Program-made: the position numbers and the translations under genes
Shown here: piece after piece, positions 19,061-54,589 of the stretch
Numbering within the stretch: the stretch's first letter is position 1
Layout of the letters: each line of letters begins with the position of its first letter
Origin: Selaginella moellendorffii
Taxonomy: Eukaryota > Plantae > Lycopodiophyta
Assembly: GCF_000143415.4 (NCBI RefSeq)
Contig: NW_003314279.1
Span: 274,734 to 338,733 of the forward strand
Length of the DNA stretch: 64,000 nt
Reading direction: 5' to 3'
The notes under the pieces: generated by a model
Told to the model about the DNA's origin: nothing
Seen by the model: the letters and a program-made list of their open reading frames with translations, nothing else
The model's database searches: none

Positions 19061-19438
19061 TTTTGATACTTGAATCATTGTTTGAGCCACTATTGCAGTG
19101 CTGGTGTGCGGGCATACATAGTTTTTTTAATTTTATTTTGGACCTTCTCACGTACTGGTGTGAAAACTTGGTGTTGTGTTACTTCATCACTTTGTGGGAT
19201 GTTGTTCGTCAGCAACTTTGAGGAACTTTGTTGTTATTCAGTCTGGTGTATTGTCGAACTTTGATGTCGTCAGCAAGACAATTGCATACGCAAAAACAAA
19301 GTTGATGGAACATCAAGCAAACTCAATCAAACGCATAAGTTTTATAAAAGAGCGGTTCGCTTTTTGCTCCGTTGTTTACTAAGAGGTTACTGATCATTCT
19401 TGTGTGGGAGAGCCGTGGTCAAACTTTAGGGCCATTTG

Positions 19439-21450: not shown

Positions 21451-21621
21451 TGAATCATCCCAGATTTATGTTTTAGCTTTACAGGTTAATAGACATCATC
21501 GCTCAAGCGAAGGGAATGAAAGTTCCATTTCATTGTCCAGCTTGAATAGTTAAAAAGCACTGTTTCCCGGTTACTGATAATTCTTGTGAGAGAGAGCCGT
21601 GTTCAACTTTAGGGTCATTCC

Positions 21622-22650
21622 ATGGCGATGGCGAACGAGAAGAAGGTTTGGGCATCTGGTTTCCTTCGTGAAGCGGCTACTGAAGGAGGGACATCACGTT
21701 GTCGGGGTACTCAGGCTAATCGATTCTACTTAGAAATTGCTTTTCTTGTTTGTGCGAGCTTCCGGGGGAGAGAAAGAAGGCCGACCTTGTCACGGAATTA
21801 GGCGCCTTTGACAATATTGTCCAAGTTTCCATCTCGCGGGCCGTGACTTTCAGCTACAAGGAGGTAACTTTGCTTGACTCCTTCGATTCAACAGCTCTCT
21901 GCCAGCTATGGTCTAGTCTTGTATCTCGAACTTTTACTGGTTCGCTTTTTCTTGTCTTTGTGGTTCTTCTTCCAGACCGAGATTGTTGATCCATGAGTGC
22001 TTGGAACTCTGAACGTGCTCAATGCCTGGAAACAATCCACAACAGTCAAGCGAGTGGTGTGCACGTCATCCATGGCTTCTGTTAGCGCGAGGAACGACTT
22101 GATGAATCGGTGTGGAGCTCCCCAGACTGCTGCCGTGAGATTGAGGTAAGATTCTTATTTCCACAAGCAAGAAAGAACGAATTCTTACAAGTTTTTCAAG
22201 TCCAAATGTGGTATGGTCTGGGAAAGACTCTACCCGAGCAAGCAGCACTCGAGTTTGGGAAAGAAAACGGCATAGAGGTGATCACAATCGCTCCCAGCGT
22301 CGTGGGAGAACTTCTCTCGTCCAAGGCACATTGTAGATTGAGATTCCAAACACATTGTAGGAGCCACGGACTGTTTCGATCAGGCTGGATACGTTCATCT
22401 CGACGACGTTGCTCAAATCGTCCACCTCCTCCCCCCCTCGACGAGTAAGATCACGCAACAAATTTTTCTATTTTTCTCGCAGTTCTCATTCCTTTGCATG
22501 CTTGCAGGATCGAGGTCGTCATATTTCACGGGATTCAACTCCACAAAGCTTCAGGACGATCTTGGGATCCAATTCAAGTCGCTGGAGCAAATGTTTGAGG
22601 ATTGCGTTGACAGCTTCGAACGCAAAGGCCTCATAACTCGAGTTTGATAG
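21622..22650 (+). pseudogene. TKPR1/CCR-like reductase copy 3, heavily deleted
   Basis: Collinear with copy 2 but with many short deletions and stops; [18 protein letters not shown] retained. Confidence 0.88.
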
Positions 22651-23376
22651 TTGACTTTAATGCTAAGGAAATCCTCCTTGAATAAAGTCTCTGTGATTAG
22701 CATCCAAGAAAACAGAAAACAAGATTAAAGTCCATGTGTAGAATACTTTTGTCATCAATGCCTGTCTAAATCGTTTGGGATTGGCAGACACTAGTTTCTA
22801 AAATGTACACTCGAACATCCATTCAAACCATCTTCGCTCGCATGTCTTCAATGCAGAATTTGTGCCGATTGTGTAGTCGTCAAAGACGAACCCAAATTTG
22901 TGTCAATCGCTGCAGCGACCCAGTCTCGCAAAAACTCTTTTCTAATTTCCACTCTTTATACGATGCTCACTATTTCGTGTCCAAGTGAAACAAAACTTGG
23001 TGTAAAAGTTCTATACCACCACGTTTGACCGGCAAACAGTGAGAGTTTGACTGGCACTGCGCTGGTCAACCCTGCCACCTCCGAGAAAGAAAAAAAATGC
23101 GAAGGTTTTACATGCCGGGTGCCATTCCTGGAACCAGCCAATTCCTGTGAACCCTCCCTGCTATAAATTGGAGCCTCCTCTCTCACATCTCCATAAATCG
23201 ACGATCATAACTGAGGTCCACTCTACAAATTTGGAGCTCTTCCATCTCTAATTCCAGTTCTAATCCCAGTTCTCCTAATAGATTCTAAAAAATCGAGAGA
23301 ATCGATCGCAAGTGCAAGTCTCCTGCTGTCGAAAGCTCTCCCCAATTGCTGATCGGATTTTGCGCCCTCGATCCAA

Positions 23377-26902: not shown

Positions 26903-28009
26903 GATAACAGAAATGCAATATCAATTGCCCGTTCGATCAGCTGGATGGACTGATATCCCTAAGGAGTAATATGCTCTTTAACCAGCGTTCTTGCTTCCCC
27001 ACGACCGCCTGACATTGTCAGCCCTATGATTCCATGCGGCACAATGCAGACATCCTCGGGGAGCTGCCAGTCTTATACAATGACATCCCACGTCCAGCAC
27101 AGGATGAACGTATGGAAGAAATTTTAAGTCGCTGCAGACCACTTCATTGGTTCTTTCCTTCATTTTGATGCATCCTCGCGATGCATTTCCACTCGAAGTT
27201 CTGTGCTCCGTGTGCCATCCTTGAACAATCACTCTAAATACCCTAAAAGCTTTGATGACTAATTTTGGAGCCAAGAAAGATTTTAGACTTCTTTAATCTG
27301 CAACAACTTGAGAACTGTTGAGGATTAGAAGGGCTTCAACCTGGAGGTGATCGACTTGGAGCTTTGTGAATAGAACGATTAATACATTTGTCTTCAACAC
27401 AGAAAGATACTAAGAAAGGTGGCAGAAAAAATTATTAATCGAAAGAAAATAAACACCACTGTGGAAGTTTTGTTGCTTGAAGCTCTTTCGCTGTTTCCAG
27501 CCACAGAACAAACTCTGTTGATTAGAAAAAATTCTGGAAAGGAAAGGGCTTGTGTGGAGGGTGAGCCAGGAGTGACTGTCACTCACATTGCCTTTATCCT
27601 CCTTTGCTGCCAGCATCCTTCTCAAATTTTACAGGAGTTAGGTTTGTGCTGGAATCAGGGAGTGTGAAGTGAGTACTACTCTTCCAGCTTTAGACTCTTC
27701 TTCATTAAAAAACGTAGACTCTATTCACATGCTAATCTCAAGTTTAAAATGTTTATATACTATTAGACGACAGTATATACTAGACTATCCTAGGATATAC
27801 CAATATATAGTTGTCAGGGTATAATGCTTAGAACTAATTAGATTGTTAAATCCCATAAAGCATTAAAGAAGAATTCATTGAAATCATTCCCATCATTTAT
27901 ATATCTGTATCTTCAAGAATGCTGGACCAAGGCCAGCTCAATGATCCTAACAGTTTTAATCATCTATAGTCATATGGTTTGGAAGTTGATGATCTATAGC
28001 TTGAGAATG

Positions 28010-28180
28010 GTATTTATGCATTGCTGATAGCCTTGAGCTTGAGCAGTCGTGACACCTGCTTGAAATAGAGGTCAACTGTTTGCTTACAGTGCCTCAAAGC
28101 TGTGCCAAGATGTGGTTTAAGGAAGGATGGCCTTGATGAGCCAGAAGCATATATCATGCTTTCAAACCTTTACACAACTA
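28010..28180 (+). pseudogene. PPR E-domain remnant
   Basis: EPEAYIMLSNLYTT* resembles the E-motif end. Confidence 0.4.
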
Positions 28181-29677
28181 ATAGATCTTGTTTGAGATGT
28201 TTTCATGTACAACTTTGGCCACTACAATCTTAGTATGTTGTGAGTGCTAGCTTTGATAGCATTTTGGATGCTGGAATTTTTTTAAAAGATTTTTAAGGTG
28301 TTATGATAATTGATAAATGATAAATAATTATGTTAATTTCTTAATTATTCATATTAAGATTAAGAGTGACAGAGCCTTATTAAAATTCATAAATTTTATG
28401 ATAAATTCAAAGAAAATTAAGTTTTTCTGCTAACTGAAAAAATTTATTAGATCTTGTAGCACTTCAACATTACTTTAATAATATATTATAAAAGACAGAA
28501 TAGAATATAATAGTGGTTTTCTATATAAGGTTTTTTAATTAATGACGGATACAAGCTTGTTCTTGAGCTCAAATTGCCTACCTACCCCACTTTAGCTAGA
28601 ATGCTATAATGAGCAATGTTTCTCCACACAAATTAGCTAGCTATGGAACATGTGGCTAGAGGTCTTATATCAAATCTATCAAATGAGTCCATGAGCAAGA
28701 GAGAGCTATCCATGCTCCCATTTCCCTTGATTATGTCTAGTGATAGAGGAGAGAGTTATAGTGTTCTCTGCTGGATATGAGTGTGCTGTAAATGCATCTT
28801 CACCAGTTGCTACTCTCTATCACTAATAAGGAAATTTTAATGTCCTTTGAAATGCATTATTATTAAAATTTTGTCTGCCACCTTGAGGCCATGACTTGGT
28901 ACTTATTAGGAGAGTATAAATGTGGTGGCAAAGGTCCTAGTGCCATGATCTGAGCCACTAGGAACAGTTGATCTTATATAAATTTAAATTTTTATAAATA
29001 CTATATAATGCATCTTAGCCATTGATTATATTATAAGATTTAATCTCAGCCATAAGGAAAATAATATTCTAAGAATGTCCTCAACAATTTTCAAACTAAA
29101 AATAGATTTTTACTTAAATTCAAAAGTATAAGTTTATTATATTTTAAGATACTGTTTAATATAAAAATATAAAGATAATTATAAATAAATTAAAATTAAA
29201 TAAATCTTGAAACATTATATCGAAAAATCAAAAGATAAAAAATTAATAAAGAAATTATCAAATAAAGTTTTTACATATTATTAAAAGAAGTTTTAATTTA
29301 CATAAGCATGAACCTTACCAAATCATGTTTAAAGAAACATAATAAAAATAAAACTAGAAATATTAAGTGATTAATTATTATAAATATTCATTTAGTATGC
29401 AAATGGCAAATAAAGGCACTAGAGATGGCTTCGTATTAAGGTCAGAAGCTAGAGCAATAGGAGAAACTGAACAATGTGGGAACTAAAAAGGCTAACCATA
29501 TAAGTGGTGGAGAGACTTTGTTAGCAAACGTGGCAATAAGTATTAAGTTTAGTTGATGCCTTTGAATTTAATCTTGAGGCCTTGGATCTACATATCCTTT
29601 TTCTTACCCGATAGATCCTCTAGGAGAGGACTTGGTGGCCCAAGAGGACTTGTCAAGGGTGCCCTTCACTCTTTGAA

Positions 29678-29777
29678 NNNNNNNNNNNNNNNNNNNNNNN
29701 NNNNNNNNNNNNNNNNNNNNNNNNNNNNNNNNNNNNNNNNNNNNNNNNNNNNNNNNNNNNNNNNNNNNNNNNNNNNN
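29678..29777. other. Assembly gap (100 N)
   Basis: Run of N. Confidence 1.
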
Positions 29778-30019
29778 TTAGAAGGACTTATTAATACGTA
29801 ACTTGTGATACCTACATATTGGCAACAAAGGAGGTAAAGGTGATCAACATCTAGGCCACCACACTAATATAGTTGACATTCTGCCAAAGGTAAAACCTCT
29901 TACACTGTGTTGCCATATTTGTTTAGACATACTCCTTATCTTGTAGATTTTCCATTGCCCCTAATGGGTTAGTGCATTCTTCTACTTGAAAAGGAAAAAA
30001 ATAAAATAAAATAAAGTGA

Positions 30020-30423
30020 TATATGACTATAAATCCCTATATCTATTAGGCAACTTTATCATAAAAGGATAAAAATTTTCTAAGAATATTTTTAGCATGC
30101 TCTACCCATAATATAAAAGATCTATCTCTAAGAAAAATCACTCCAACTTCATTGTAAGCCAGATATACTTCGTATATATCTTCTATGGCTTCTATAAAGT
30201 CAACACATGTGCCTCCATGAAAATGCTTAGAAAAATGCCTAGGGTACAAATTCTAAAAGTATAAGTACTAGGCCTGAAACAATTTAAAGCAAATTGGATC
30301 CAAAATAATGATGTACAATTACAGTAATCTCCAATATTAGTTCCAATTTTAAGTTTAAATACAAAGGATAGATGGTGATCAAAATGATTTTGCATATTGA
30401 ATGAGTATTACTTTTAGTTCCAT
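30020..30423 (-). pseudogene. Degenerate paralog of the small secreted protein at 34316
   Basis: atggaactaaaagtaat start; TNIGDYCNCTSLFWIQFALN...HFHGGTCVDFIEAIEDI...LRDRSF; deletion in the signal peptide, frameshift. Confidence 0.85.
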
Positions 30424-32439
30424 AACTATATTTTAAATATTATTAATTATAATATATAGAAGGAATTAAAACAGCTTAACTTTTGATTATATGTTTTGAC
30501 CTTTTTTACTTACATATTTTATATTATTATAAAATTTTAATTATTAAATTATATTTTATTAGTTAATAATTTATTTAATATAATACACAAAGTCAAAATT
30601 CAATCATAGTGTTTATATTTATTGAAATAATAATTTATTAAAGTCTTAAAAATCTAATATTTCATCCTAATAATAACATTTAAGGATATAAATGCTTGGG
30701 TTATGGGAATAGATATATTAATAGTGGTTTAGACCTTGCTTATATACACGAATGGATAAACTAAATTCCTTTCCAAATAGATAATCCATATGTTATATTA
30801 CTATGTATTACTAGTGTAGAGCAAAAGCAAAAAGATAATCTTAAACACTAAGCAAAATACTCAAAAATCTTTACTTTTACAATTTATAGTACCCCTCACC
30901 TCCACCAATATAAGTGCTCAACATATGAGAATAAGTATATTCATTGAGATTTAACATCCTACTTATATAAAGAAATAAATTTAGTTCTAAATGGACTGTT
31001 TATATATTGTACTACTATAATTAGTATATTAATTCTAATACATACATACATACATGTATAGAGAGAGAGAAAGAGAGAGAGAGAGAGGACAAAATTTATA
31101 AGGATATTAAAAAAAACATAAACTTAGCTACAACGTTTTAGAATTTTTTAAAAATAAATAGAAGTTCAAAATGTTCAAAGCTTTTGAAGTTTTACAACTT
31201 ATAAATGCTAATAATCCTTTTTAACTTACAAAAATGCAGCAGCCACTATTATTATTCAACACTATCTTAAAGAAAGAACTATATAGCTTAATTTACTATG
31301 TGTTACATTGCAATAATACCATATTTTCTTATTTATAATTTATATATTTTTTATATAGATTATTTTATTACCTTTTATCCAGATAAAATCTTTTATTTTT
31401 CTGTATTACTTAGGGTTTTTTAGTATTTTTAAATTTATTTTTTTATTATTAGTTTTTTCTTGCTTTTTATGTGTTTCTAGTAATATATATGATATTGCTA
31501 ATATTTATATTTTCAAATATTCTATTTTTTCTGATTTTTATGTGTATTTATAATATTGCTATATGTGTATGTTCACTTATATATGTTTTTATATGCTATA
31601 ACAAATATTTTACTTTAAAATAATCATCCTAATTGTTTAGAGTATGTGTTCTTTATAATGATCCTAATTGTTTCTGTTATCCTTCAAGAAATATTACAGA
31701 CTGAAGTTATGAAGAATCTTATTCTTACTAAATAATATGAATTACATGTGTAATAATGAAAAACATTCTCGAGATATTCTCAGAGAACAAATAGTTTGTT
31801 TTTTGAGCCAACCTTTGGCACTCAATCTTTGCCACCCAGTCCAATTTCCATCGACATCCTGATTGGGACAAGCCAATTCTAAGATTTTTCACTCCATGAT
31901 AGGAGGCACCTCTTAACTCAAGGATGCCGAGACAACAAGCTATAGCAGTCAAGACCAACTTTGATGCTGAAGCGATCGGGCAATGCATGGCATTGGCTAT
32001 CAACCTAAATTCATTGGTCTCATATTTCTTGGGTTTGGGGGAAACCATATAAATAGTTACACTATATTATTATAGGTGCATTGATTTTTTTCATTATGAT
32101 GGATTAATTATTTAACTTTTTTTATGTGTCTTAAGTTCTAAATTTATTAATTTATTTAGATAATTTTTTTTTACTATTTTTTTAACATTCTTATTAGCAA
32201 TAAAGCTTTTAACTCTTAGATTTTTTTTCAACTGTTTAATGTGGGGCTTGCATGCAAGGATGGCCGTGCATGGAAGAACTCTTGATTCACACCACCTCTT
32301 CTAGAGAAATGCTTTGGAAAGGTGCTCTTCTACGCTTGTGCTGCCAGAAACTTGTGGAGAATCCCAGTGAGTTTCACGCATGAAGTGATGCATTGCATCA
32401 CTGATGCTTAATTATATACAATCTTCACCGACCTATACT

Positions 32440-33060
32440 AATTTCCATTATTCTTGTCACCTGCCTCAGACATTTAAGGTAGGCTTTCCATCCTTCCTTA
32501 GCTTAGTTGAAGGTGAAACCCATTCACATGTTTATGAGCATTCTTGTCTGCAAGTCCATTGATAAAGTACTCTACATGCAACTTTTCAAGCCAGTTTGCG
32601 ACTCAAGCATACTCTCATATGTACTTTTCCAAACTTTTAGTGTTGGCAGCCAATATTCATGTCATGATGAACACAACCAAACTCTTTTGAGATACAGTAA
32701 TGGCCCCAAACGATATCATCATGTTTGTCATGGTCTTCATGCTTAGGATCATCTCATGCTTTGGTAACCTCCTTGTTATGAAATTACAAAGCCACCAAAC
32801 CATAACCTATGGAATAGACTTTTCTACTCACCACTTGGTTCTACTCACAAAGCCCATGGAACCCTAAATCTTCCTATATTTGTCCTTAGTGTTGATGCCA
32901 CATAATAAGCTTATAGAGAGTATAGGCTATCAAAAATCTAGTGCAAATCAAGGCCAAGTCCTTGAAAACCTTGAGCTTTCAATTGCCATTGCTGCTTGAG
33001 GGGAGTTTCTTAACATGTTGAAGCATTTCTTATCGAGGTCTTCTAGAGAAATATAACCAC
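32440..33060 (-). mobile_element. Possible decayed retrotransposon gag region
   Basis: Stop-riddled coding-like island with LHVEYFINGL gag-like motif. Confidence 0.3.
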
Positions 33061-34315
33061 TTACATTGGTGGAAATAAAGGGCATTGCAATTTGTACCTA
33101 AAGGGAAAAACTTTTTAAGAGTGCTTTGCTTTAATGTTTGGGACTGTGTTTTTTGTTCTTATTTCTTCATTCTTTTTTAGATTTAGATTTGTATTAGCTT
33201 TTTGCAAGATTTAGAGTTCTAGTTATCTCTGTGCTTAGATTTGCTCTTCCTTTTGATATTCATTGCATTCTCTTCTTTTGCCATGCCACACCATCACTAC
33301 ATAACAATGCATGGGAATTGAATTTCGTTTAACTTAAAGGATAGTGTGAAAGGGCCCTAAGTTTACCTTTTAAATCAGTAGCATTAGATTGATCAAGTTC
33401 TTGGAGGAACAAAATGACAATAGCCTTTGCAACCAGTGACTTTCTCCCTACTCATGCCTACTGACTATAGCTTTCACTCTAGGCCTAGCAAACTCCAGAC
33501 CACATATAGCAAAGAGCTTTGCAACATATAATCCATTTTTCTCCATTTCTTCCTATGATGTGATGAGGTAGGTAGTCTAAGGAAGGGAGAAAAATTATTT
33601 AAGCTTTAAATGCATTTCCTTATTTCCCCATTCCATATCTAAAACTTCTTTTCAATGGTTTCTTCTTTTACTTTCTCTTTTTTTTGTGTGAATTTTTAAC
33701 TCTTTACCTTGATGTCTTAAAAGTTTTATTCTTTGGATGAGGGGGTAGAGGGGACAAATGAGAGCCCCACCTTTACAATGAAGTAAGGAAAAGTGATAAA
33801 GAAAAATTACAAGTAATTTTGATATCATTTATTTTTAGTGTATCTTTCCCTTTAAACAGAAATGGATTAACAATCACTTATTTATTTATCCCATATGTTC
33901 AAAATATGGTGACAATATATCTAAATCTCATCATTTAATTACATATCTTATAAAATTATCTTTTGGCAAATATCTTGTAAGTTGTAGCTAATTTAATGTC
34001 AAATTATTTTAATAATTTTTTTATTTCATGATTGAACATTCTTATTTGCAATGAAAAATTTAATTAGACACTTTAATACTTCAATAAAAGTATCTGTGTG
34101 AATGTAATTTTGAAATTATTTAATTTTAACTTTTTACATAGGATTATTAAGTTTAAAACAAGCTAATAGTCAACCAGGAAATAAAATGATTGAGTTTGAA
34201 TTTTTATACCAATTATAAAATATCTAACTAATAAGGCCAAGAGATATATTCAAATTTATTTTGTTTATTCCTTCCTTCTATATAAACTCCATAATAAAAT
34301 TACAATTATAAAGTT

Positions 34316-34777
34316 ATGGAACTCAAAGTAATCCTATGCAATTCTATCTTGATATTAATGCTCATCCAACAAGCAAAATCTTATTCAGCACCATCACTTC
34401 AAGATTGTATTGACACTTTTTACATTAGAACTAATGTTGGAGATTATTGTAATTGTGCATCATTGGTTTGGATCCAATTTGCTCTAAATAGATTCCAGCC
34501 TGGTAGCTATTCTTATGTAATTGGCACCTTAGGCATCTTTCTAACGATTGGCAGGTTTCATGGAGGCACACGTGCAGACTTCATAGAGGCCATTGAAGAT
34601 ATCTGGGAAATATGTTTAGCTCACAACGAAGGTGGAGGAGTGATTGTACTTAGAGATGGATCTTTTATGTTACGGGTAGTGCATGCTCGAGAAGACTTAA
34701 CAATATTTTCAGAAACTATCAAAGTAAATAATCCTTTCATAATGGAGTTGCCTGATAAATGTAGGGATCTACCATGA
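34316..34777 (+). CDS. Orphan small putatively secreted Cys-containing protein (153 aa, intronless ORF)
   Basis: Hydrophobic N-terminus ending AKS|Y, TATA at 34279-34286, open frame in very AT-rich DNA, two decayed paralogs in the window. Confidence 0.7.
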   Translation: MELKVILCNSILILMLIQQAKSYSAPSLQDCIDTFYIRTNVGDYCNCASLVWIQFALNRFQPGSYSYVIGTLGIFLTIGRFHGGTRADFIEAIEDIWEICLAHNEGGGVIVLRDGSFMLRVVHAREDLTIFSETIKVNNPFIMELPDKCRDLP

Positions 34778-35034
34778 TTGTACACATTTGCTTTTAAGCC
34801 TTAAATCTAAACATCTCTTTACTTTCTTCTCAGAACCACTAGATTCAAAGCTGACGAGCTAGCAACGTACCGTTTGCACGAGAGAGAGGTCGGAGACAGT
34901 CTGCGCTGAGACGTGTAGAAAACGCATAGAATGTCGGGAAATCGGATATACATTCCTTTCTCGTACAAATGGTGTTCTCCTCAATTTATCATTCACAATA
35001 ACGCACACGCTGACAAGCGGCTATGGATCTGGAT

Positions 35035-37155
35035 TCACGATCTGGGGAGCAAGAAATCCAGATTTGCGATTGAATATGTCCAAACAGCAAGTGTAGCAGC
35101 ACAGTGTTGGAGTTGCCTCGGCGAAAGCTTGTCAACTGTGTCAGATTGGGTATGGTGATACCTTTGCGTAAACACGGACAAGTGAGTAGAGGAGAGCTGG
35201 AGATAAAATTGACATACCAAAAGTATCCACTAGTTCCAAAGTTGACGTCTGGATATGGAGGATTGCTGAAGGTTTTGCACGGATTGTTTGATAGGCTCCC
35301 AACCCGTGGATCCAGAGTCACTAGGCTTCCACAAGGAACTCCAGCATCACACTGAAAATATGTATATCATCTCGGTGACAAGAAAAACAAGACATGGAGA
35401 TGCTTACCATGGGTGAAATGTCCGTCCCTATGCTCTGTCCACTGACATTTCCGGATCCAATCCCCGCCAGAAAAGCTTTTCCGATCTAAAGAGGCATTTT
35501 ACGAAGTTGCAGAAGTTCTTCTTGAAGCTGTAGTTACTGTACCTGTTCCAGAATGGACCGTGCAGCTGCGGAGCCTTGAAAAGAAATTCCCAATGGAGTG
35601 AAAGTTCCTTCGTCAGACTCAATGGCTATACTCGTCCTGGTTTCATGATAAGAAGAACAGGAAGAAGAGAGGCTGAGACTTACAACTTCGACTCATGCTT
35701 GTGGTTAAGGTAGTATTGCTCAGCACCTTTTGCACCATTTTCTTCATTCACAAATAGCACTGCTCGAAGCGTACGGCGTGGCCTTAGCTTTAGCTGGTGA
35801 ATAAGTCGCACCACCTGGAAAATCCAAATGGAATCAGCTACAATATGCTCCGTAAAAGAATAAAGAATACCTCCCAAGAAACAAATGCTCCCCCAGCATC
35901 ATCCATTGCACCGTCTGCAATGTCCCAACTGTCCATATGGCCTCCAAAGACGACCACCTCGTCCGGTTTTTCTGCACCTTTGATCTCCACGATCAGGTTT
36001 CTGGAAGGAACATTGCAAGTTTCATCAAACGAAATCAATAGAACCGGAAGTGACATACCGCGAAGGCTTGTCAGTTAACATATGAGCCTGCAACGACGCA
36101 TTTCATATATACTCAGAATGAAGTTTCTAAGACTTTTACCTCCATGTAAAACTCGATGACAATCTCTTGGCCTCGAGCTTGCATTCTTGCTAGCATTCTA
36201 GAGTCTTCCACGGATATCGCAGCAGATGGTATTCCAGTAGTTCTAGTGGCACCGGTGTGAGGAGTCTATAAGAAAGAGCTATGTTAATTCACAAAATTTC
36301 CTCTTAAAGAAATAATCACCTGTAAACCATACGGTGTCATTGAGTGAACGAGAGCGGCAACAGCACCATAGTTTTCGGCCCGTGTCGCTCCTAGTGTCCT
36401 GTACTTGACAGTGTTTGAGTAGCCTTGATCAAAGTTTACATTGTAGACCACGATCTTTCCTGTTCAAATGTGATTTCCTCAAGGATAAAAGAACCGAAAA
36501 AAGTGGACTGGTCTTTCAGTTTACCTTGCACGTCACTGGCTCTTTGATCAAGTTCTTGGAAGGACGAAACGACGATGGCCTTTGCAACCAATGACTTCTT
36601 TCCCGGCGTGCCAACGCTCATGCCTAGACCGACCATATGAAGCTCCTTCACTCTGGGAGATAAAAGCCTAGCAAACTCCCGGCCACGTACCCAGGAAGGA
36701 ACCATTACGTGCTCTTCAACGACAGATAATCCATCCTTCTCCATCTCTTCCTGCGATGAGGGAGGTTCAGATTAAGCAAGGAAAAGAAAAAAGAGAGAGA
36801 AAGGCTTACTCTTGTCCAATCTAGAGCTTTCTCGAGAGCATCGGAGCCACTGAAGCGAGGTCCAAACGTATCAGTCATGTACGCAATCCTCTCGTAAACA
36901 ATACTAAAGCCATCGTGAAAATGAGAAAACCTGGCCAAAGAAAAGAAGGCACTCACTCGGAAGAGAATGCCGCATCGATAATGGCATCGGCATCGTCCTT
37001 GGCCTGGGGCGGAAGCAATGGCGTCGCTTCCGGTCGCCGTGGTAGCACTTGGGTATGCTGCGAATGGCGCCAGCAATCAAGATCAAGAACAAAGGAAAGC
37101 CGATTGAGCTTACAGTCACCAGCACGAGGATGGCGACCAAGAGCCAAAGCGCCAT
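35035..37155 (-). CDS. CPQ: Carboxypeptidase Q / plasma glutamate carboxypeptidase-like M28 metallopeptidase (multi-exon)
   Basis: Signal peptide; DTFGPRFSGS, VPSWVRG, TPHTG, GGHMDSWD...GAMDDAGG, FVNEENG, IESDEGTF, YHHTQSDT. Confidence 0.85.
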
Positions 37156-37648: not shown

Positions 37649-39958
37649 TCATAGCACGGGGTACACGCAAGATCCATAGCCTGTACAACGAACACCAATA
37701 TATTTAGTATCAAAAGCAAACCAACAAGAAACTCGGAAAGATCAAACTGACAGAGAACACTAAAAGAAAACCAAGTAAACAATGACAACTATAGTTAGTA
37801 TCAAAAGCAAACCGACATGAAACTCGGTAAGAACACTAAAAGCAAACCAAGAAAACAGTGTTAATCCTAGTTAGTATCAATAGCAAACCCACAAGAAACT
37901 CAGTAAGATCAAACTGACCGAGAACACAAAAAGAAAACCAAGAAACAATGGGGACTATAGTAATATCAAAAGAGCAAGATCAAACTGAACGAGAACACTA
38001 AAAGAAAACCACAGACAAAAAACAAACTCAGTAAGATCAAACTGACCGAGAACACACCAAGGAAACAATGGCATCTATAGTTAGTATCAAAAGCAAACCA
38101 ACAAGAAACTCAGCGAACACTGAAAAAGAAACCAAAGAAACAATGAAAACGATCGAAACTTACTTGGATCCACGCTGGTCAGCTTGGCAAATCCGTTGAA
38201 GGCGCACGTCCCGCCGGACCTCTTCATCTTTTGCCAGTAGGAGTTGAAAGCGTACGAGGCGTGGAGCCTGACGAGGTTGGGAAGATAGCAGGCCTGTCCG
38301 GGCTGGATTGCCGCGCAGTCGGCCTTTCCCCCTCCGCACGCGTAGTCGATCGCGTCTTGGACGTCGGCGGTGCTCACGTAGTCGGCCTTTGCGACGCACC
38401 ACTGCCCCTGCCTGGACGAGTTTCCAGTGGAAAAGTTCCCCGGAATCGCTGCTTGGGGGAGCGCTGGCACCTGGGAGGCGTTTGCCTTTGGAGATGAAAA
38501 GTAGGACGACGACGACGTAGCCGCCGGGGATGAAGGTGCTGCTGCTGCTGTTGACAGAGCCGGATACTTATCCACGGGAGTCTTCCCGGTTAGATCGATG
38601 TCGTAGACTTTGCTACCGTTTGGATACAACAGCCCCCAGTTTCGCTCTGTCGCGGCACCCGGCTTTTGATCCTCGTTGAACAGAGCAAAGATGTAAGTGT
38701 CGATGAGCCTTCCGGGTCGTCTAGGAGTGCCGTGGTTCTTGTTCTTCCTGTTCTTCCCGAGAATTCGTAGAACCAGCCTCCTGTTGTAATCGGCTGCATT
38801 GGCAAGCGAGGCCCCGACGGAGCCTCTGCTCGGCCACCCGGTCTCACTTATAGAAACCTGGACGCCACCATAGCCGAGCTTGGTCATTGCGACAACCAGC
38901 GCGTCCAGCTGCGCGTCCAGGAGGTTGTCGTAGTGCATGCCGGAGGGATCCTCGGCCTGCGAAGCATTCGAAGACGGCCCTCGAAAGAGCGCGTAGTCGA
39001 GCGAGATAGTCAGCTGGTCGTCGAGCCATGCAAAGTATGGGTAGACGTTGATGAAGAACGGGCTCTGCGTCGTCTCCAAGAACTTGAGCATGGGCTGGAT
39101 GATGGTGTCGGAGACGTCGTCTCTAAACGCTCCCTCGGATGGAGGGAACGAGACCTTCAAGCAGTCGATGGCGAGGGACGTGGTGACTTTGATCTTGCCG
39201 TGGCCCAGCCGCTGGAGCGAAGAATGCAAATTCTCCATAGCCGGGACGAGCTTGCTCCACACCGTTTGCCTGAGGGAGAGGTCGGAGAGAATCTCGTTGC
39301 CAACGATGGCGGTCTCGATCTTGGTGGCGGGGTACGCTGCGACGTTCTGCTGGACCCATTGATCCGAGAAGTTGGAAGAGGCGGCCATCTGCTCGATCTC
39401 CTGGTTGGTCACCATGATCGCCACGCGGAGATTCGTGCTCTGGAGCGCCTTGAGGACGTCGGGATTGGCGTCGTAGATCTTGACGCTGCGGATCTTGAGC
39501 GACTGGAGGAGCTCCACGACGCGGGCGGGCGGGGGGAGATTGTCCGCCACTCGGCCATAGTTGATCCCGATGGCGTGCTGCTGCTGGTCGTCGGCGAGGA
39601 GCACGGCGAAGACGAAGGACACGGCTGGAAGAAGGAATTCCCCACATCAGTACCAAGAAAGCTGCTAGAATATCGATGCGATGGGGAGCCAAAGAGAGCT
39701 GGAGCGTAGAAAACGCATAGAATCTCAAGAAATCCTCGAGCGAGGAACCGATGCTCGAGTGTGGAGGAAGCGAAACACTGAGACAAGGACACGAAAGGGG
39801 AGAATGCGAGAAGAAATGCGAAGACCCCAGCGAAGAACTAGAAAGAACTCTTGCATACCAATGCTGGCGACGAAGAAGAGCACGACCATAGCCACGGCGA
39901 GCATGATCGAAAGCCCCGTCCCTGGCCGCCGCGTCGCCGCCTTCGCGTGCCTCGCCAT
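37649..39958 (-). CDS. Glucan endo-1,3-beta-glucosidase (GH17 + X8/CBM43); exons 39859-39958, about 38164-39624, 37649-37680
   Basis: Signal exon; IGINYGRVADNLP, VGNE, ISETGWPS, FALFNED, ERNWGL; X8 WCVAK...DPS|YGSCVYP*. Confidence 0.93.
37700..38150 (+). repeat. Degenerate tandem repeat (about 70-95 bp units) in the last glucanase intron
   Basis: Recurrent tagtatcaaaagcaaacc, aagatcaaactgac-gagaacac and aaagaaaaccaag blocks. Confidence 0.8.
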
Positions 39959-40564: not shown

Positions 40565-43500
40565 CTAAAAGAATCCAAACCCCTTCCCTGGAGCCGCCGC
40601 AAACAAGCTATACTCCCCAGCGTTCATGCTCGCCTTATTGATGCCACTGGGCAATCGGTCCATACACTTGATGCTCACCACCACCTCTTCTGCGTTGGCC
40701 TCGCGCGGCGGCGACGATGCGAGCTTCGGAGAGTCGGAGACAAGCGGCGGACAAGCATCGCCACCATTGCTACTGGCACCACCACCACCGCCGCTACTAC
40801 CACCACCACCAGAAGTAGCAGCGCCGCCACCAAAGTGAAACAACGAGAAGGTGTTTGGCGTGAATCTAAACTCCTTCTGGAGCTCCTGGAATGAGAACGT
40901 CGCCGTCTGCATTGGCTCCCCCAGCGATCCCGGCTTCTCCACCTTGAAGCTCTGCTGCTGCTGCTGCTGCTGCTCTTGGATCTCCGGTGCTAGAAGCGGC
41001 CTCGTCGCGTCCACTGGTATCCACGCCGCCGCGGCGTAGTCCGGTCGAGGAGGCGGCGGCGGCGGCGGCGCTTGCATGGAGACCATCTCGCCGGCGGACA
41101 GCGATGGCATCCTCAGGGGAGGATGGAAAATGCGAGGAACCGGAAACCTGGGATAGCCGAACGCTGCCGGTCCTGGAATAAACATCGGCGGTGCTGCTCC
41201 TGGAATGAATGGAGTCCTGGCTTGAGGCCCTCCCCACGGGCCGTGCACCGCAGGAAAGCACGCGAATCCTGGCTGCTGCGACTGCGGCGGAGGATGCCGG
41301 TGGACATGGTGGTGAGTCGGAGGTGGAGGCGGCGGCGGCGGCGGCGGCGGTGGCGAGTGAACTGGTAGCATCTCGACCACTGTTGTGTACGTGTGATGGT
41401 TCTTCGCCGCTCCGCCATGAACGAAACCATTCACGTAACCGTTTCGAATGACTTCCGGTGAGCAGACTGGAGGAGGATATGGAGTTCCCAGCGGTGGAGC
41501 AGTAGCAGTAGTAGCGGCGGCGGGAACCGAGCATGCTGCAGCTGGGGTCGTACAAGTTTCCGCTGCACTGGCTACTTCTGCTGCATCCTTCGGCTCCTCC
41601 TTCGCTACGTCGGCTCTGTTTCTCGGGCTTTCTTTCCGGCTATCAGCATCCATAACCTCAGCCGAAGCTCCACTTAAACTGCCATCTCCGATAGCCTCCA
41701 GTGGCTTTTCCAGCTCTGTCCGATCGACTAAAGGTTCCACCTGCATCATCTGGCTGTCCGATGATTTTTCCTCATCCACCCCGCATGACAACGACTCGTT
41801 GGCAGGGGCGGCTTCTCCCTTGGTCACACCACCCACTGGATCCTCTAGAGGACAACAGACATCTCCATTCAGCTGCACGTCATGCTTCACCCCGTTCGCG
41901 TTTAAGCCTTTCGTGACAACTTTCGTGTATGTCATGCCTTCCTTCCTCGACCTTACTGATTCAGGAGAAGTGGGCAGTTTCTGACTGCCTAGATTGGTCG
42001 TTGCCGGAACCCGGCTCTTAAACACACCAGCCTTTACGTGCAGTTGCCTGGACTCTGGTTTCCTAGTCACCTTTGTAGGAGACTCCTGCATTCTCTTGGC
42101 CCAGAATGTGGTCGTGCATGCGCATTGCTGCGTCTCTTGTCTGGCCATCGGAAACCCGTTACGAGCTTTCAACGGCTCGCTGTCAGTTTGCCGCTCTTGT
42201 ATGGCCAAATCTGAGGAGCCCCTGTGACTAACTCTTTCGAAAGTCATTGATGTCCCTCGTCGAGAATATCTAACTGGAACTGAATCAGCCACCTGCTGTC
42301 TCTTGCCATTTGATCGCCTCTTTGCTGCCTTGGACTGCTCTACAATGAATGCTCCGCTACCGTCCCTCGAGTTACCAGTGTCCAGAGTGCATCCGGCAGG
42401 AGACTCTCCGCCGCTTCTCTCAGATTCGTCTGGCACCAGCCGCACTTCTGTCATGTCCGATAAACTACCTTCTTCATTCTGTTTGCTATCAGCTTGAAGT
42501 GCAACATTCTCCTCGGATCTCGTGGAAGACGGTCTTCCACCTTTGCCTTTCTCCTTCTCACGTTCTTTGCACTTGAGCTTCTCTTTCCTTCTCAGCTTCT
42601 TTTCCTTCTCTTTTAGTTTTCTTCTTTCCCTGCGCTCCTCCTCTTCCCTTTTCTCATGCTCTTCCTCTTCCAAAAGCTTATTCTGCGAGGATTTCTGCGT
42701 TAAAAAACGGGAGGAATAATCAGAAGACACATACCTGCTTTTCCAACGTGGCTATCTCTTTGCATGCAACTCGTACTCGGTCTTCTAGTAATCCAAGAGC
42801 CAGGCAAACGAAAATACTATGTGCATTTTGCCGAGCAGTTCCCTCCCGGAACGCTTTCTCAACCTACATAAGCAGAGATGATGACAATATTCAGCTAAAA
42901 CTATTTTTTTCTGTAAGCCTGCGCACCTGTTCCTTGAAAATAACCGTTGCTGCGTCTAGAAGAAAATCGCGTGCAAGCTCGGGACTTTTAGCGTGCTTTT
43001 GCGAACGAGAGCCTTCACCATCCAGTTCATTGCCATCTTTGTCGAAACCATCGTCGTCCTTGAATTCAAAACAACATTTAGTAAGTGACATGATAGACTG
43101 AAGCACAATCCCTACCTCCTCTTCTTCTGTTTCTTCTGCATGCTCGAAAAAGCGTTGTATGCTTTCGCCCTCAGTAATGGAAACAATCCCGTCACCGACA
43201 AATAGCCGACGATGTACACATAATTCACCCTTCAAAGCATGAGCTTTGACGGTAAAGTCACTACATCTCCCGTCACGTTTCCAAGCTCTGAGAGTGATGA
43301 AACAGTCGAAGATATTTCCTAGATCTAGGCCCTCCACTTCCACTCTGTCCGATAAACCCACATCTTCAAAGCCAAATATGTCGGACTTGCCTTCTGCAGT
43401 TCCTAGTGCCCACTCAAAATGTTGGTATGGAGTGCCAACTTCCCCTGCGATTGATTCATGCCAATCTGCTTGTACTGCATTATCAGATACCTATCAGATA

Positions 43501-44846
43501 AAACTGAGCGCATTAGAAACAACCGAACATAAACATAAAAAGATAATACCTCATACTGGAACGTAGTATCCGCAGCACAGAACCATCTTGTGCATCTTGG
43601 CTCCTTCCTAGCTCTCTTCAGCTCCTTCATTTCTTTGAACTCGCGAAGGACATTGCGTCGACAATCCCTACAAAACCTTTTGCTGTCGAATCTGTGAACG
43701 AATGTTAAAGTCGCACTCAAACGAAAAAGGGAAAAAGATGATGTACCTGAACATAAGTCTCTCGATGAAGTCCTCCTCTTTCATCCTCAAAAGGGACCGT
43801 CTTGTCTCTTCACTTAAAGCCGACCAAAAATCCACTAGAGCTTCGCAAGAAAGTCTGGTCGTATGAAGAGCACAGGTTTCCTTTATTCCATGGCCTCTGC
43901 CCGACGAGTAAATACCACTACTCTGGCTTATCCAGCCTCGTCCATTCCCCCCACAGGCGTCCGGGTAAAGCAGCTCTCGTTCTCGCTCCCTTCCCCGTGC
44001 ACTCTCAAACACCTGAGAAGTAGTACTACACACTGTCAGTTTAAACAACTGCAATGCGAGATGTAAAGCAAAAGAAAATCCTAAGAAAGAGAGGCAAGTA
44101 ATCCGGGGGTACATTTTGGAGCACCTCGAGTGACGTCCCGTCTAAGAAGCAGTCGAGGACAGTAAGCATGCAGTCCCTTGTTGCTGCTAATCCACCCCAG
44201 GGATGAAGGGAGGGATCTTTGGCATCGTCTTGAAGCGTCCCAATGTAGCCAGCACCCGCATTGCCATTAACTTCGTCCTCTGGGTAGACTTTCCGGCACT
44301 TGGAAGTGTTACGTCCAACGGAGAGGTTCTTGCCGTACATAACAATCTGAGAGAATCCTTCCACCAAAAGTCCATGGCACCTGGAGCAGTAGAGATTCTT
44401 CCGGACTTGTTCGAATAGAGTTTGCTTATCGATGCGGAGCAGGTTGCGCCTGGCATCGGCTGGAAGCCCATTCCAAAACTGCAATGAGCAAATCGCAGCG
44501 AGTTAAAATCTCGTTCCAGGTTATGCCTAGCAAACAATAAGCTTCTCTGACACCCCCTGTGGCTGCATGTATAGACACCAAAAAAAAGGCAGTCATGAGG
44601 AAAAGCGCTAGAACAATTCTACATCACCACGACGAAATCCAAAACGAGAGAGGAAAACCAAATGAAAGAAAATTGTAAAACAGCCAGCTATGGACTTACC
44701 TTTTGAAGCTGCGAGTAGGTGACATCTTCAGTGTTGGAGCGAGACCATATAGAGTTTCGTGCGTCGCTGGGCGTGTTGCATAGCGAAGACCCGGAAGAAG
44801 ACGACGTAAAAGAGTGATGGACCTTGTTGCGCGATAGACCTGGCAT
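40565..44846 (-). CDS. Plant-conserved protein of unknown function (NST1-like coiled-coil, Pro-rich C-terminus), multi-exon
   Basis: MPGL...QLQK|FW, IDKQTLFEQVRKNLYCSRCHGLL, FDSKRFCRDCRRNV, AHSIFVCLALGLLE, KEKEKKLRRKE, EYSLFAA end. Confidence 0.85.
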
Positions 44847-46250: not shown

Positions 46251-47098
<848 letters not shown>

Positions 47099-49030: not shown

Positions 49031-50149
49031 AGCTTTGTGTCGACCAATAGTGCTTTGCTCCACTCAAATCCGGCCTCACACAGTGGTGCTTGAGCTCCCA
49101 GGGAATTTGCTGGGGGTCTTTTCCCCAGGCTTGCTAGCGTGTCTTCCAAGTACATCCTCATACCCAGATTCAGACCGATTCGAGCGTTGGCCTCAGAAAT
49201 CCTCTCTTCTCATGCTGTCAGCAAAGTTCCTGGGATCCATCTCCAGCTGCCCAGCTCCGCTGTTCTCGAAACAACCATGGATCCTGGCTGCTTCCTGGAA
49301 CAAAACTTCCACTCATGTTTGCTGCTGTTCCTGGAAAGCCTTGCGATCCATATACTAGTGGCTGAGCAGCCTCTACAGCTTCTCCCTGTCCCCCGACTCC
49401 TCTCCACCAAGTCCTCCAAAGTCTAGACTTGAGATCCCATGACTTCCTGGCATGAAATGTTGCTAGTGTGGCTGGAATAGACCATTGTTGATGCTGTGGA
49501 GGCTCCCAAAGGAAGACTGTAAGATCGGCTTGAGAAAACCAGGAACTAGCTGAGACATCTTTGATCATTCTCCAGCGTCATGGACACTATCAGTGATGGC
49601 CTTGTTTTGAGCTGCCAGCTGCTGATAATTCTCCCACTCCCACTCTGATATGGATGCCTTGAACTTATAGTGTCATTGCCACCGACTATGACGCTTGATC
49701 CACCACCTGTTCAATGGCATGCTTGAGAGGAGGCCTTTCATGGTTGGCAATGCTAGTGGTTGTTTGTTTTTACTCTTTATCTCTCTTCACTTTTATTTCA
49801 CTTCATCCTGTTATTTTTTACTTTTACTTCCATCATTTTTCTTTTCCTATTATGTTTTATAATATTTTCTTTTTACTCTTTAATTCCTTTTTTAGATCCC
49901 TTAGCCTTTGTGTTAGTGTAGTTGATTGGCTCAAGAAAGAGTATATTATCTTATTTTGACTTTGAACTTTCATATGAAGCTAAGCTTTTATTTCAATTGG
50001 GAATGCTCATACTATAAAATTCTTATTTGGCATCAGTCACTATAAAAAATAAGAAATATTAAAGAAATGTGTTATCCAAAGTTTCAAAGTTTTTAAGTAT
50101 GTGATGATGTGATTATTTTAAATATATACCCTTTTCCTCACACTTAAAA

Positions 50150-51480
50150 TCCTACCAATCTTTTGGATCATTTAGATATTGCTTCTAGGTATTGGCAAGT
50201 GTTAATGGCTAAAAATGATGTTTTTAAGAAAAACTTTTATACACTATTTGATTTTTACAAGTTTTTACTAATGTTATTTAATTTGAATAATGTTTTAGCA
50301 ACTTTTCAATAGAGGTTATTTGCAATATACTAAAGGTGACTAGCCACTTCATTAATAATGTCTTGATACATTCAAAACAAATGTGGGAGGAGTATGTCCA
50401 TAATATTTACAGGATGTTCAATTAGTTATGGAAAATTTGGTCAAAGTGCATATTTGGGTTTAAAAATATAATTTATCTTGGGTATTATATTTTTAGTAAG
50501 GTCTTACAAGTTGATCATAATAAACTTGTGGTTATTCTAAACTTTTATACTCCAAAATATGTGAATAATATGTAAAATGAAATATCTTAGTCATTTTGCT
50601 AATCCTCTTTCTAATCATAGTGCACTATTATAAGTGTTGCTAAAGTCATAAACATTGTTTTTTGTTTAGTTTGAACACTATGAATAGGCATTTGAGGAAC
50701 GAAATGTTTACAACTCTTCCAATTTTGACATATCTTAATTATACTCAACTTTTCATATTGTATATAGATGCTTCTGATATTGGCTTTAAAGGTGTGTTAT
50801 TGTAAAAGAGTGTGTGTCCAATTAATATCATCATATTATGTATATCAGTTATATATTACAAATAACAAATGTGAACTACTCCATAATAGAAAAAGATTCT
50901 CTAGCAATAGTTTAATATCTTAAGGATTTTCATATATATTTATATGATTCTCAAATATTGTTAAAGGGTGATTATGTTATAGTCACTTCATTAATGAAGT
51001 AGAAGAACTTAATTAGTTATACTACTTGATGGGTTCTGAAGCTTTAAATATATAACTTTAAAGTTATTCATTGCATAAAGAGCTCTATGGTTGATATTAA
51101 TGTTTTTTCTCAAACTCTTTTTCCTTTTTTACTCTCTTCTTCTATTCCTTAGAAGTATATTATTGTGGATTTTTTAAATGAGAATTCTATACTATTAATA
51201 GTTATTATGCTTGATATTTAGTTTCCAGAAGGTGTAAAGTTAAATTTACTTTTTCTTAATGAGATCTATGAAGTTCAAAATATTGAACTATAACTTTATA
51301 GTAGAGTTGAAAATTGTACATCACTTATTGATAATTTGCTATTTTGATATTTACATTCTTATTATCCTCTTAAGAATAATTTATTTTTACTTTGTGGGGA
51401 TTGATTTTAATGACCTTTTATGGTTGATGGTGCTTTTGATATGAATTCCACACTTTCTCCATGTTTATCGTAATTTTTAT
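50150..51480 (+). mobile_element. Decayed Ty3/gypsy pol (RT-RNase H) remnant
   Basis: TTLPILTY...FILYIDASDIGFKGVLL and NYSIIEKDSLAIV RNase H-like motifs, with many stops. Confidence 0.7.
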
Positions 51481-51899
51481 ATTCTTGACAAGCATATAAA
51501 ATGGACATCATTGTGTGATAGAAAAGGTTTTTTTATTGGCTAGAGATGCAATTAATGTCATTTAGTATCTACATAGATATATTTGGTGCCAAGCTCATTT
51601 CAGCTAGTGGTCTTGATCCATTACACTAATTACACTAATTTTTATATCTATCAATACCTCTTTTTGATGTTCTTTTAGATTTTAACTATTAAATAAGATA
51701 ACTTTAACTACCTTTCATCTTTTTGGATGATGTGAGGTCTAAATATACAATTAAAATATCATATATTGTTATTAGTGTAATAGGATTTTTATAGTTGTTA
51801 GATTGATTTCAATCTGGACCACTCACTTCTATATATAAAAGGCTAATTAAATATGCATATTTCTTATACCAGGAATGTGCATATACATATTTATAATTA

Positions 51900-52315
51900 T
51901 TCAACATTTATTAGGCCACTCCATTAATAATGTACCTTCTACTTTGGTAGATTTTAACATCTCTAACTCATTTCAAGCATACATCACTTAGTATAAAAGA
52001 TCCATTGCTAATGACAAGAAAACCTTTGTAGGCTAAACATATTTGCTATCTATTGCTTCTATAAAATCATCACATGTGCCTTCATGAAAGTGGCTTATTG
52101 TAAAAAAAACACCTAAAGAACAAACTCTTGAAACATTATCCCAGATTGAAACCATTATGAGCAAATTGAATACAAACCATTGATGCACAATTACAATAAT
52201 CTCCAATATTTGTTTCTGTTTATTCAATAAAATATTGAATTTTTGATCCTGAATAAGCTCTTACTTGTTGGATGAGAACCTATTATCATGATAGTAAAAT
52301 ATAAACCTACCTCAT
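51900..52315 (-). pseudogene. Third, degenerate paralog of the small secreted protein at 34316
   Basis: aatattggagattattgtaattgtgcatca, VCSLGVFFTISHFHEGTCDDFIEAI and atggagtggcctaataaatgt align with 34316-34777. Confidence 0.8.
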
Positions 52316-52579
52316 AATTCTTAATTTTAACTTTCCTTTTTATCTAGTTTATATATAAAAAAGAAGGGGCTAGAAACCTCCTTCCAACATAAAATTTAAA
52401 CTTGAAAGCCTCTCTTGGCCTTATTAGTTGAAGATTTCATAATTGAAGTTGAATTTTAAACTCAATAATAGTGGACTATTGTGTGGGTTCTTAGAATTAA
52501 GATTCTATTATAAATCAATGGTCCACAAAATCTTTCAAAATAGAGAAAACATGTAATGATATTTCTTATAAGTTATGCC

Positions 52580-52682
<103 letters not shown>

Positions 52683-54589
52683 AATACTATTTATAATATA
52701 TAAAACTAATAATAATATATGATTATATATGATTATTATAGCATATTAATACTAGGTTTTTTGTTTTGCTAAATGAAAATAAGGGCCATAGTACATATAC
52801 TACTAAGATATTAAGATATCCTTAACATTAAAGTATTGGAAACCTTAAAATATCCAATTTATGTTTAAAAATTATGAACATGAATATCTCATAAATTTAG
52901 GTAGAGGTCAATAACCTTAATTTGTGAAATAGAGGCTGAAGTATAATTTTATACTTGAACTTGCTCCAAAACACAAAAAATAAATAGACATAATATAAGA
53001 AAAGGTGGCAATTGTATTTGCAATATATGTTCTAATGCTTTGGAAGATTTTATATTTTAAACAACTTTATAAGTCTTTATTAGTCATCCTGGTTCCATAT
53101 AGTGAATAAGTTAGGAAATCAATTGTAATGTTTTATTCATGTTTATGTGCTGGACGGAAAATTTATTTAGATGACATCTTAATATTTTTTGGAACCCAAA
53201 ATTCAAATGGAAAACTCAAAAAAAAATTAAATTATTACATATAATTGTTTATTATTCAATTTTAGTTACATTAATTTACCTAAAGTCTTTTTCAAAGATG
53301 CATGATAGTAATATATTCAAAGTTAGTAATATAAAAGCTCACAGTTGTTTTAATCTACTCTTAGAAATCTATATCGAAATTATTATTTTGATGTTACCAT
53401 TATGGCTAACAAAAGCCAAGTGATCCTCTCCATATAAACAAAATTCAAAAAAGAAAGAAATGACTGTTTGGGCAACCAAGAAAGGAAATGTTTTAGAAAC
53501 TTTCAAATGTAAAAGTCATGGAGTGCATTTTTATTTTCTATCTTATATCGCCTCCATATCTTTTCCTGCAAAGGATGTCAAATGAGTCAAAGAAAGACAA
53601 TTTCAAAAGCTGCAGGACGACCATTTGAACATCACTCTTCCTATCAAAACTGAGAGTAGCACGTTGCTGCGCTTTGCCTGCACTCAAAGTCCGCATTAGA
53701 AAAGTCCCCAACACAACCGGTTTGCTTTTCTTGAGCCAGAAACAAGGAGAGAAGAGACCAAAGAAATGGAGAAAAAAGAAAACAAGGAAAGGCAGAAGAG
53801 ATTGCTTACCATAACAGTGTATGAGACGAGCAGGATCTCCAAGCTCTTGAGGTAGCAAATGAAGGCAGAACGACTTTACTGTAAAAAAGAACACAAGAGT
53901 CAGCTAAGCTATCACCTGAGAGAGATAAACAAGCCAACCTTGTGACAAGTAGATATAAAACTACAGGAACGGCCGTAAAGCCTCGTTGGAGAGCAGCAAA
54001 ATTGAGAAGCGATGGTGCTAAGTGACCACGATTCCCACGAGCCCCTGCGAGCTCGGGAGCTCGTTTATGATCACATAGCTCGTAAAAACCAGAAGAACTG
54101 GAGTGAAAGCTAGATAAGGAACAGTGACCGAGAGAGGAGAGCACGCTGGTACATGGACCCCACCAGAGCCTTGATCGCCGCGGTGACGAGCCAGCCGCGT
54201 CAAAGAGAAGAGATCGAAGCCGCCGGAGAGGAGGAGTGCGTCCAGGAGAGCCACCAGAGCTACAAGCTTGCGGTCCGAGAAGCACTGGGACGCCTGCTGG
54301 CATCGATGCAGCTGTGGCCGATCGCGGCGTATGCGAATCCTGCCCAGATCATTTCTCTGCTCTTTTCCGGAGCGAGCGATCAATCAATCGATCCATCACT
54401 AGGCATTATTGGCAAGGGCGTCACTCCTATGTAATGAATAAGGTTTAAATTACTTGTATTACTTTTTTTTCCAAGTGAGCTCTTCATTGATTGTCCATTT
54501 TTGTTGATCGATCAACATACACCTCGAAAACCAGTGTGATTTGTGATGAATATGATCTTGCACACTTCATCCCTCTAAACAAGCATTAC

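Follow-up and report, generated by a model that had tools for sequence, protein, structure and literature searches.

Defensin-like and other cysteine-rich peptide families are lineage-specific secreted proteins of plants. Another example is given by the effector-like small secreted proteins (SSPs) of Populus (PMC5428498). The protein considered here, encoded by an intact open reading frame (ORF B) in the genome of the lycophyte Selaginella moellendorffii, resembles plant SSPs in its length below 200 aa, its predicted signal peptide, its conserved Cys residues and its taxonomic restriction, and in both cases the genes are clustered, diverge rapidly, are frequently found as pseudogenes and are often missed by annotation. 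However, it is unrelated in sequence to any of them, and at 131 aa its mature form is the larger one; it has only five Cys residues and a predicted mixed α/β structure. Judged from its sequence, ORF B is on balance probably a genuine, unannotated protein-coding gene belonging to a lineage-restricted family of secreted proteins with no detectable relatives elsewhere.

Three further systems come close in one respect or another. KP4 is a compact α/β sandwich with ten Cys residues in five disulfides. KP4 and Ecp2/Hce2 are, as predicted for the product of ORF B, small secreted α/β proteins containing Cys, but here the host is a plant, the Cys residues number five, and the searches turned up neither a fungal nor a viral homologue. 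In the 'two-speed' genome of Leptosphaeria maculans the effector genes lie in AT-rich isochores. The likeness, by analogy only, is that small secreted-protein genes sit in AT-rich, gene-poor blocks between GC-rich ones and that dead copies decay from GC to AT; here, however, the genome is that of a plant, no bodies of transposable elements (TEs) are recognisable, and the decay is consistent with the usual C-to-T change of silent DNA and not with RIP. The targets of gelsolin domains are mostly intracellular actin, and small secreted proteins that consist of such a domain alone are not known. Gelsolin/ADF-type domains share the predicted order of secondary-structure elements with the protein described here and gave the best weak matches in the PDB and BFVD, but at E values of at least 0.011, with 8–17% identity and no Pfam match, and a signal peptide is predicted here.

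Genomic context and AT-rich blocks

The window, that is, the whole stretch of 64,000 nucleotides that was analysed, corresponds to GL377583.1:274734-338733 of assembly GCA_000143415.2. Locus L002, which carries the neighbouring GH17+X8 ORF, matches window positions 27649-49958 in reverse at 100%, except at a 100-base assembly gap (29678-29777); the ORF itself shows 100% identity to a β-1,3-glucanase of S. moellendorffii. Public annotation calls no gene between positions 27649 and 35034, so that ORF B (also copy B of the family) and the decayed copy A lie unannotated. The nearest gene encodes an M28 peptidase. It is read from the opposite strand, with a coding region that ends at 35035, and is convergent with ORF B. 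The other neighbours are ordinary plant genes, namely those for a sugar transporter, a phosphoglycerate dehydrogenase, tandem copies of the epimerase family, a B3-domain fragment and an O-methyltransferase (OMT); one more is a probable class III peroxidase, as read by eye from its ORF translation. Runs of N marking assembly gaps are present at 1203-1629, 16183-16282 and 29678-29777, the last of them about 250 bp from copy A, which means that the block around this copy is incompletely sequenced. Rfam and tRNA scans of the window gave no RNA genes.

The first-pass annotation had placed the family in low-GC DNA, and this setting was borne out, with 25–34% GC in the AT-rich blocks vs 50–57% in the genic ones. 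Its further description of these blocks as repeat-rich TE DNA did not hold, as only (AT)n-type arrays, the three gene copies and a few short, weak pairs were found. The degenerate arrays occupy positions 46252-47097 (~850 bp) and 52580-52680 (~100 bp) and produce spurious ORFs of 270–300 aa in four frames. No TE signature was detected by self-blast, inverted-repeat search, TRF or a Pfam scan of block ORFs, and no convincing terminal inverted repeats flank the copy units. Ten block ORFs of at least 70 aa, nine from AT-rich stretches and one from a GC-richer stretch near 49 kb, had no Pfam match at E ≤ 0.1, TE families included. Thus, none of these looks like a TE protein, a statement that applies to ORF-sized remnants, since heavily decayed ones could escape such a scan. 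The coordinates of the blocks and of the features within them are collected in Table 1.

Table 1. Coordinates in the window of the AT-rich blocks, the parts of ORF B and the decayed copies.
Feature	Position	Strand	Remarks
AT-rich intergenic block with copies A and B	27000..34800 (approximate bounds)		GC 25-36%
AT-rich block with copy C and (AT)n array	49500..54000 (approximate bounds)		GC 25-35%
Upstream region (putative promoter)	34186..34315	+	common to copies A, B and C; blastn and MAFFT similarity begins here
Predicted signal peptide, residues 1-22	34316..34381	+	hydropathy and -3/-1 residues; likely cleavage before Tyr23
Mature protein (predicted), 131 aa, and stop codon	34382..34777	+	14.8 kDa, pI 4.9, five Cys
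Copy A, decayed paralogue, upstream region and ORF remnant	30030..30540	-	70% nucleotide identity to copy B
Copy C, more decayed paralogue, upstream region and ORF remnant	51904..52469	-	67% nucleotide identity to copy B

An intact reading frame for a predicted secreted protein

ORF B extends from an ATG to a TGA codon at 34316-34777 of the forward strand (GL377583.1:309049-309510), is intronless and encodes 153 aa; the uninterrupted frame with its GDYCNC, WIQFA and FHGGT motifs was found where it had been described. It is the longest ORF of the AT-rich blocks, if the frames of the (AT)n arrays are excepted. When 14.7 kb of AT-rich block DNA was shuffled 300 times, the longest ORF beginning with ATG measured 82 aa on average and 150 aa at most, and none reached 153 aa. 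Therefore, an untouched frame of 153 codons is very unlikely to persist at the local density of stop codons. The composition of the ORF (GC 0.37, GC3 0.29) matches that of the surrounding block, vs a GC3 of 0.76–0.81 in the neighbouring GH17 and OMT genes.

Upstream of the frame, the stretch common to the three window copies may represent the promoter. Within it, at 34279-34286 and 37 bp before the ATG of ORF B, lies a TATA-like box with a TATATA core that none of the three copies has lost. At so short a distance from the ATG the leader would be unusually short.

The N-terminus of the ORF B product shows the highest Kyte-Doolittle hydropathy of the whole protein, with small residues at positions -3 and -1 before Tyr23. 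A signal peptide, as proposed in the first reading of the locus, is plausible in every copy with a surviving N-terminus by this heuristic of hydropathy and the -3/-1 rule. By the same kind of heuristic, the top 19-residue hydropathy windows are all N-terminal in both intact members of the family (the second is described below) and no other membrane segment is predicted. The best conserved part of the mature protein is the block RFH-G-GT..DF.EAI.DIWE.CL. The five Cys residues of the mature protein are an odd and atypical number and amount to a Cys content of only 3.8%, and no N-glycosylation sequon is present in the mature part of either intact protein. In the public annotation neither of the two intact ORFs stands as a separate gene, and their exact products are missing from a collection of 15 billion proteins that includes transcript assemblies, the latter result being uninformative for expression. 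Together with the short leader and the odd number and low content of Cys residues, these points speak against ORF B being a genuine secreted-protein gene.

A second locus and the distribution of the family

Among the 1.84 billion representative proteins covered by an exhaustive HMMER scan there was one true relative, EFJ30363.1 (P0001; E 1.4e-7), which is the 554-aa product of SELMODRAFT_409220 on scaffold GL377575.1 of the same species. This gene model (L001:10001-12944, GL377575.1:617220-620163) is a chimera that joins kinase-like fragments to the first two thirds of a 143-aa family ORF; its UniRef name is 'Protein kinase domain-containing protein', and the model contains no Pfam domain. The underlying DNA of this second locus (L001) holds an uninterrupted second intact paralogue of 143 aa, counted from the first ATG, at L001:12155-12583 (GL377575.1:619374-619802), which matches ORF B with a tblastn E value of 1e-19 and 39% identity over 115 aa (36% overall). 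Two more relics are found in L001, at roughly 4787-5050 and 6928-7210, in AT-richer patches among GC-rich genes. In total, two intact and four decayed copies are present within the ~87 kb examined, in line with the birth-and-death mode of evolution that had been suggested for the family. There is no DNA-level similarity between the window and L001.

The two intact copies can be aligned over their whole length with a single larger gap, and all five Cys residues of the mature proteins coincide. Both have a hydrophobic N-terminal segment followed by small residues and then by a conserved Tyr-Ser pair; this A/S-YS junction and the same N-terminal layout recur in the L001 paralogues. The precursors measure 153 and 143 aa, and the two mature proteins are of similar mass (14.6–14.8 kDa) and acidic, with pI values of 4.9–5.0.

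No other relatives came to light. With the single protein as query, neither Pfam nor NCBIfam yielded a family, and for Pfam this extends to E ≤ 10 for either intact member and to a profile of the two. Searches of PDB sequences with the single protein and with a two-member profile gave only chance-level rows (E 0.07–1.3), and a word-index search with the ORF B protein alone and with the two-member profile (the latter against a set of 5.8 billion clusters) gave no matches. The same profile found no relative in viral, prokaryotic and metagenome contigs. Plant genomes were covered via their predicted proteins. A full-text literature search retrieved no paper on such a family. The initial impression that this is not a recognised plant family is thus upheld by Pfam, NCBIfam and PDB sequences, in which nothing meaningful was found; the host itself is a plant. 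One other match of the HMMER scan was set aside: P0002, a bacterial repeat protein (E 4.9e-4), was judged spurious as it matched over a 30-residue stretch repeated eight times. P0004, considered as a second haplotype, seems instead to be an earlier model of one and the same locus.

Decayed copies and coding constraint

Both decayed paralogues reported by the first-pass annotation, copies A and C, are present on the minus strand, but they extend ~130 bp further upstream than the intervals given there (30020-30423 and 51900-52315). The three window copies were aligned unaltered, with no repair, joining or consensus, and the open pieces of the broken copies were kept as separate rows. Relative to ORF B, copy A carries three in-frame stops and eight indel runs, five of them frameshifting, and copy C five in-frame stops and seven indel runs, four of them frameshifting. 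Similarity among the three copies runs from ~130 bp upstream of the ATG to near the stop codon, with nothing beyond. The copies cluster locally, at distances of 2–17 kb, and are old, as their identities of 67–70% indicate. For such local clustering on both scaffolds, duplication of a small gene unit over short distances is a better explanation than transposition.

Relative to ORF B, the sum of C>T and G>A changes vs the reverse is 31 vs 12 in copy A and 44 vs 21 in copy C. The two blocks that hold the copies, taken together, also contain decaying duplicated DNA: a segment of 235 bp at 33360-33594, within the AT-rich block, is a decayed direct duplicate, 67% identical, of part of the M28 peptidase gene (36518-36791). 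Its GC content is 0.39 vs 0.49 in the counterpart, with 38 GC-to-AT vs 15 AT-to-GC changes. The dead copies and the M28 fragment have thus diverged from their better-kept, GC-richer counterparts chiefly in the GC-to-AT direction.

A comparison of dN and dS among the copies had been proposed with the original observation. Between ORF B and the intact L001 paralogue pN is 0.46 and pS 0.94 (Nei-Gojobori), so that saturation has been reached at synonymous but not at non-synonymous sites. ORF B compared with the two open pieces of copy A gave dN/dS values of 0.50 and 0.41, and with the open piece of copy C a pN of 0.20 and a pS of 0.76. As pN lies far below pS, the family has been under protein-level selection. 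Second codon positions differ least (19 differences vs 30 and 32 at the other two positions for copy A; 30 vs 53 and 51 for copy C). First and third positions, on the other hand, differ about equally, and much of the comparison between ORF B and the dead copies therefore reflects neutral decay. This pattern is the signature of purifying selection on the protein in the past, weakened in the comparison by the neutral decay of the dead partners.

Predicted fold

Two AlphaFold2 models were obtained from shallow alignments in which the pieces of broken copies stood as separate rows, and reached pLDDT values of 37.8 and 38.2. Both of these low-confidence models place the elements in the same order: a β-hairpin, a long helix over the DF.EAI.DIWE.CL block, and β-strands. 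Foldseek searches of the PDB and BFVD libraries gave nothing at E ≤ 0.001. The weak top matches were gelsolin-type domains (E 0.011 in the PDB and 0.012 in BFVD, TM 0.33–0.43, with a pLDDT-38 query); since matches of a model at pLDDT ~38 are unreliable, gelsolin serves here as a lead only, and no significant structural or Pfam profile match to a gelsolin-like domain was obtained.

The KP4/Ecp2-type fold that the helix-and-strand pattern had first called to mind found no backing. No KP4 chain appeared in the PDB sequence searches or among the Foldseek PDB matches listed, neither intact member matched an Ecp2/Hce2 profile of Pfam at E ≤ 10, and the HMMER scan gave no fungal protein; the Cys residues are five, and the weak Foldseek matches of the pLDDT ~38 models are gelsolin-like. 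An internal duplication, in which the N-terminal and C-terminal halves would each form a helix and hairpin repeat, was considered and rejected (hhalign probability 3.9%).

Alternative explanations

The family could once have been functional and copy B could now be silent, a still unbroken pseudogene in heterochromatin-like AT-rich DNA, on the path that copies A and C have already taken. Such a relic would share its unannotated block with a dead neighbour, as copy B does with copy A, and would be expected among copies of which four of the six sampled are dead; copy B has neither annotation nor recorded product, and its GC3 of 0.29 has drifted both from that of the host genes (0.76–0.81) and from that of the other intact paralogue (0.52). 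We nevertheless regard this as unlikely. An intact frame of 153 codons is very unlikely to survive at the local stop density (0 of 300 shuffles), the five Cys residues and the conserved block are intact in copy B, and at a divergence of 20–31% copies A and C have accumulated three to five stops and four to five frameshifting indel runs where copy B has none. Somewhat less probable again is a very divergent member of a known plant secreted family or known fold (a gelsolin- or cystatin-like helix on a sheet) that is invisible to sequence methods. Small secreted plant proteins do diverge fast, both low-confidence models give the order β-hairpin, long helix, β-strand, and the weak Foldseek matches are consistently of gelsolin type in both libraries (E 0.011–0.012, TM 0.33–0.43); but none of them reaches E ≤ 0.001, and a pLDDT-38 model is unreliable for matching. 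Nor is there a Pfam family at E ≤ 10 or a meaningful PDB sequence match, and the exhaustive HMMER scan is empty outside the species.

The first-pass annotation had also raised the idea of cargo of a TE or endogenous virus, or of a horizontally acquired KP4/Ecp2-type toxin gene spread by such an element, a reading that we hold to be highly improbable. It would account for multiple copies on both strands of gene-poor, AT-rich DNA, for a short common unit (~580 bp) that ends close to the stop codon and for the lack of plant relatives outside the species. However, the units are bounded by neither terminal inverted nor long terminal repeats, the copies have no TE ends, TE proteins or flanking DNA in common (none of the 10 scanned block ORFs has a Pfam match, and the flanks show no similarity from copy to copy or from one scaffold to the other), and they are old and locally clustered (67–70% identity, 2–17 kb apart), which speaks against carriage by an element. 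As to transfer between species, no relative outside S. moellendorffii was found in the 1.84 billion proteins and none in the viral, prokaryotic or metagenome contigs, KP4 and Hce2 families are not matched, and only five Cys residues are present. Nothing at present follows from this family on toxins, viruses or horizontal transfer.

Proposed function and evolution of the family

Taking ORF B as a genuine gene of a lineage-restricted family, its N-terminal signal peptide would take the product into the secretory pathway if it is expressed. The mature protein, of ~14.7 kDa, would be acidic and of mixed α/β structure, and the five conserved Cys residues would probably form two disulfides and leave one free thiol. 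The family may have grown by local duplication of a unit of ~580 bp made up of a short promoter and the ORF, and shrunk by pseudogenisation, the dead copies drifting towards AT along with the surrounding silent intergenic DNA. The features of its class (likely secretion, conserved Cys residues, rapid divergence and high gene turnover) suggest an extracellular action in some fast-evolving interaction, such as defence against microbes or cell-cell or gamete recognition, and the partner might be bound through the conserved His-Gly-Gly-Thr and acidic-helix block; these last two proposals are the most tentative of the scheme. A role in defence or recognition in particular is conceivable but doubtful.

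A bolder variant would see in ORF B a Selaginella-specific secreted protein of a previously unseen fold, arisen de novo or diverged beyond recognition, whose genes are made and destroyed in AT-rich 'nursery' blocks that decay from GC to AT, with a function in defence or gamete recognition. We consider this quite improbable; were it true, these blocks would be a plant counterpart of the two-speed effector compartments of filamentous pathogens.

If expressed, ORF B adds an unannotated, taxonomically restricted family of secreted proteins to the reference lycophyte genome, in which the sole public gene model touching the family (EFJ30363.1) is shown to be a chimera. Orphan genes of this sort are common, and the general significance is therefore modest. 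The family nonetheless offers a small, clean case of birth-and-death evolution in the AT-rich DNA between the GC-rich genes of a plant, and it is a candidate for a new fold.

Other features of the window

Three tandemly dispersed copies of a gene segment, with 73–84% nucleotide identity, are located at 10275-11671, 19385-20837 and 21495-22731, and one ORF in these copies matches the NAD-dependent epimerase/dehydratase family. Beside the GH17 gene, an annotated gene of 1224 aa at 40565-44846 on the minus strand is without a Pfam family, and a scan of its longest ORF, of 721 aa, gave no match either. The stretch 34853-34943, directly downstream of ORF B, shows two short matches to the GH17 region (39245-39734), one of 50 bp at 80% and one of 29 bp at 90%, which are possibly another small gene-fragment relic. 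Tandem repeats of 71–76 bp, in about two copies each with 80–84% identity, are found at 37754-38041. They fall within the GH17 gene model (37649-39958) and lie downstream of the gene's long ORF, which ends at 38087.
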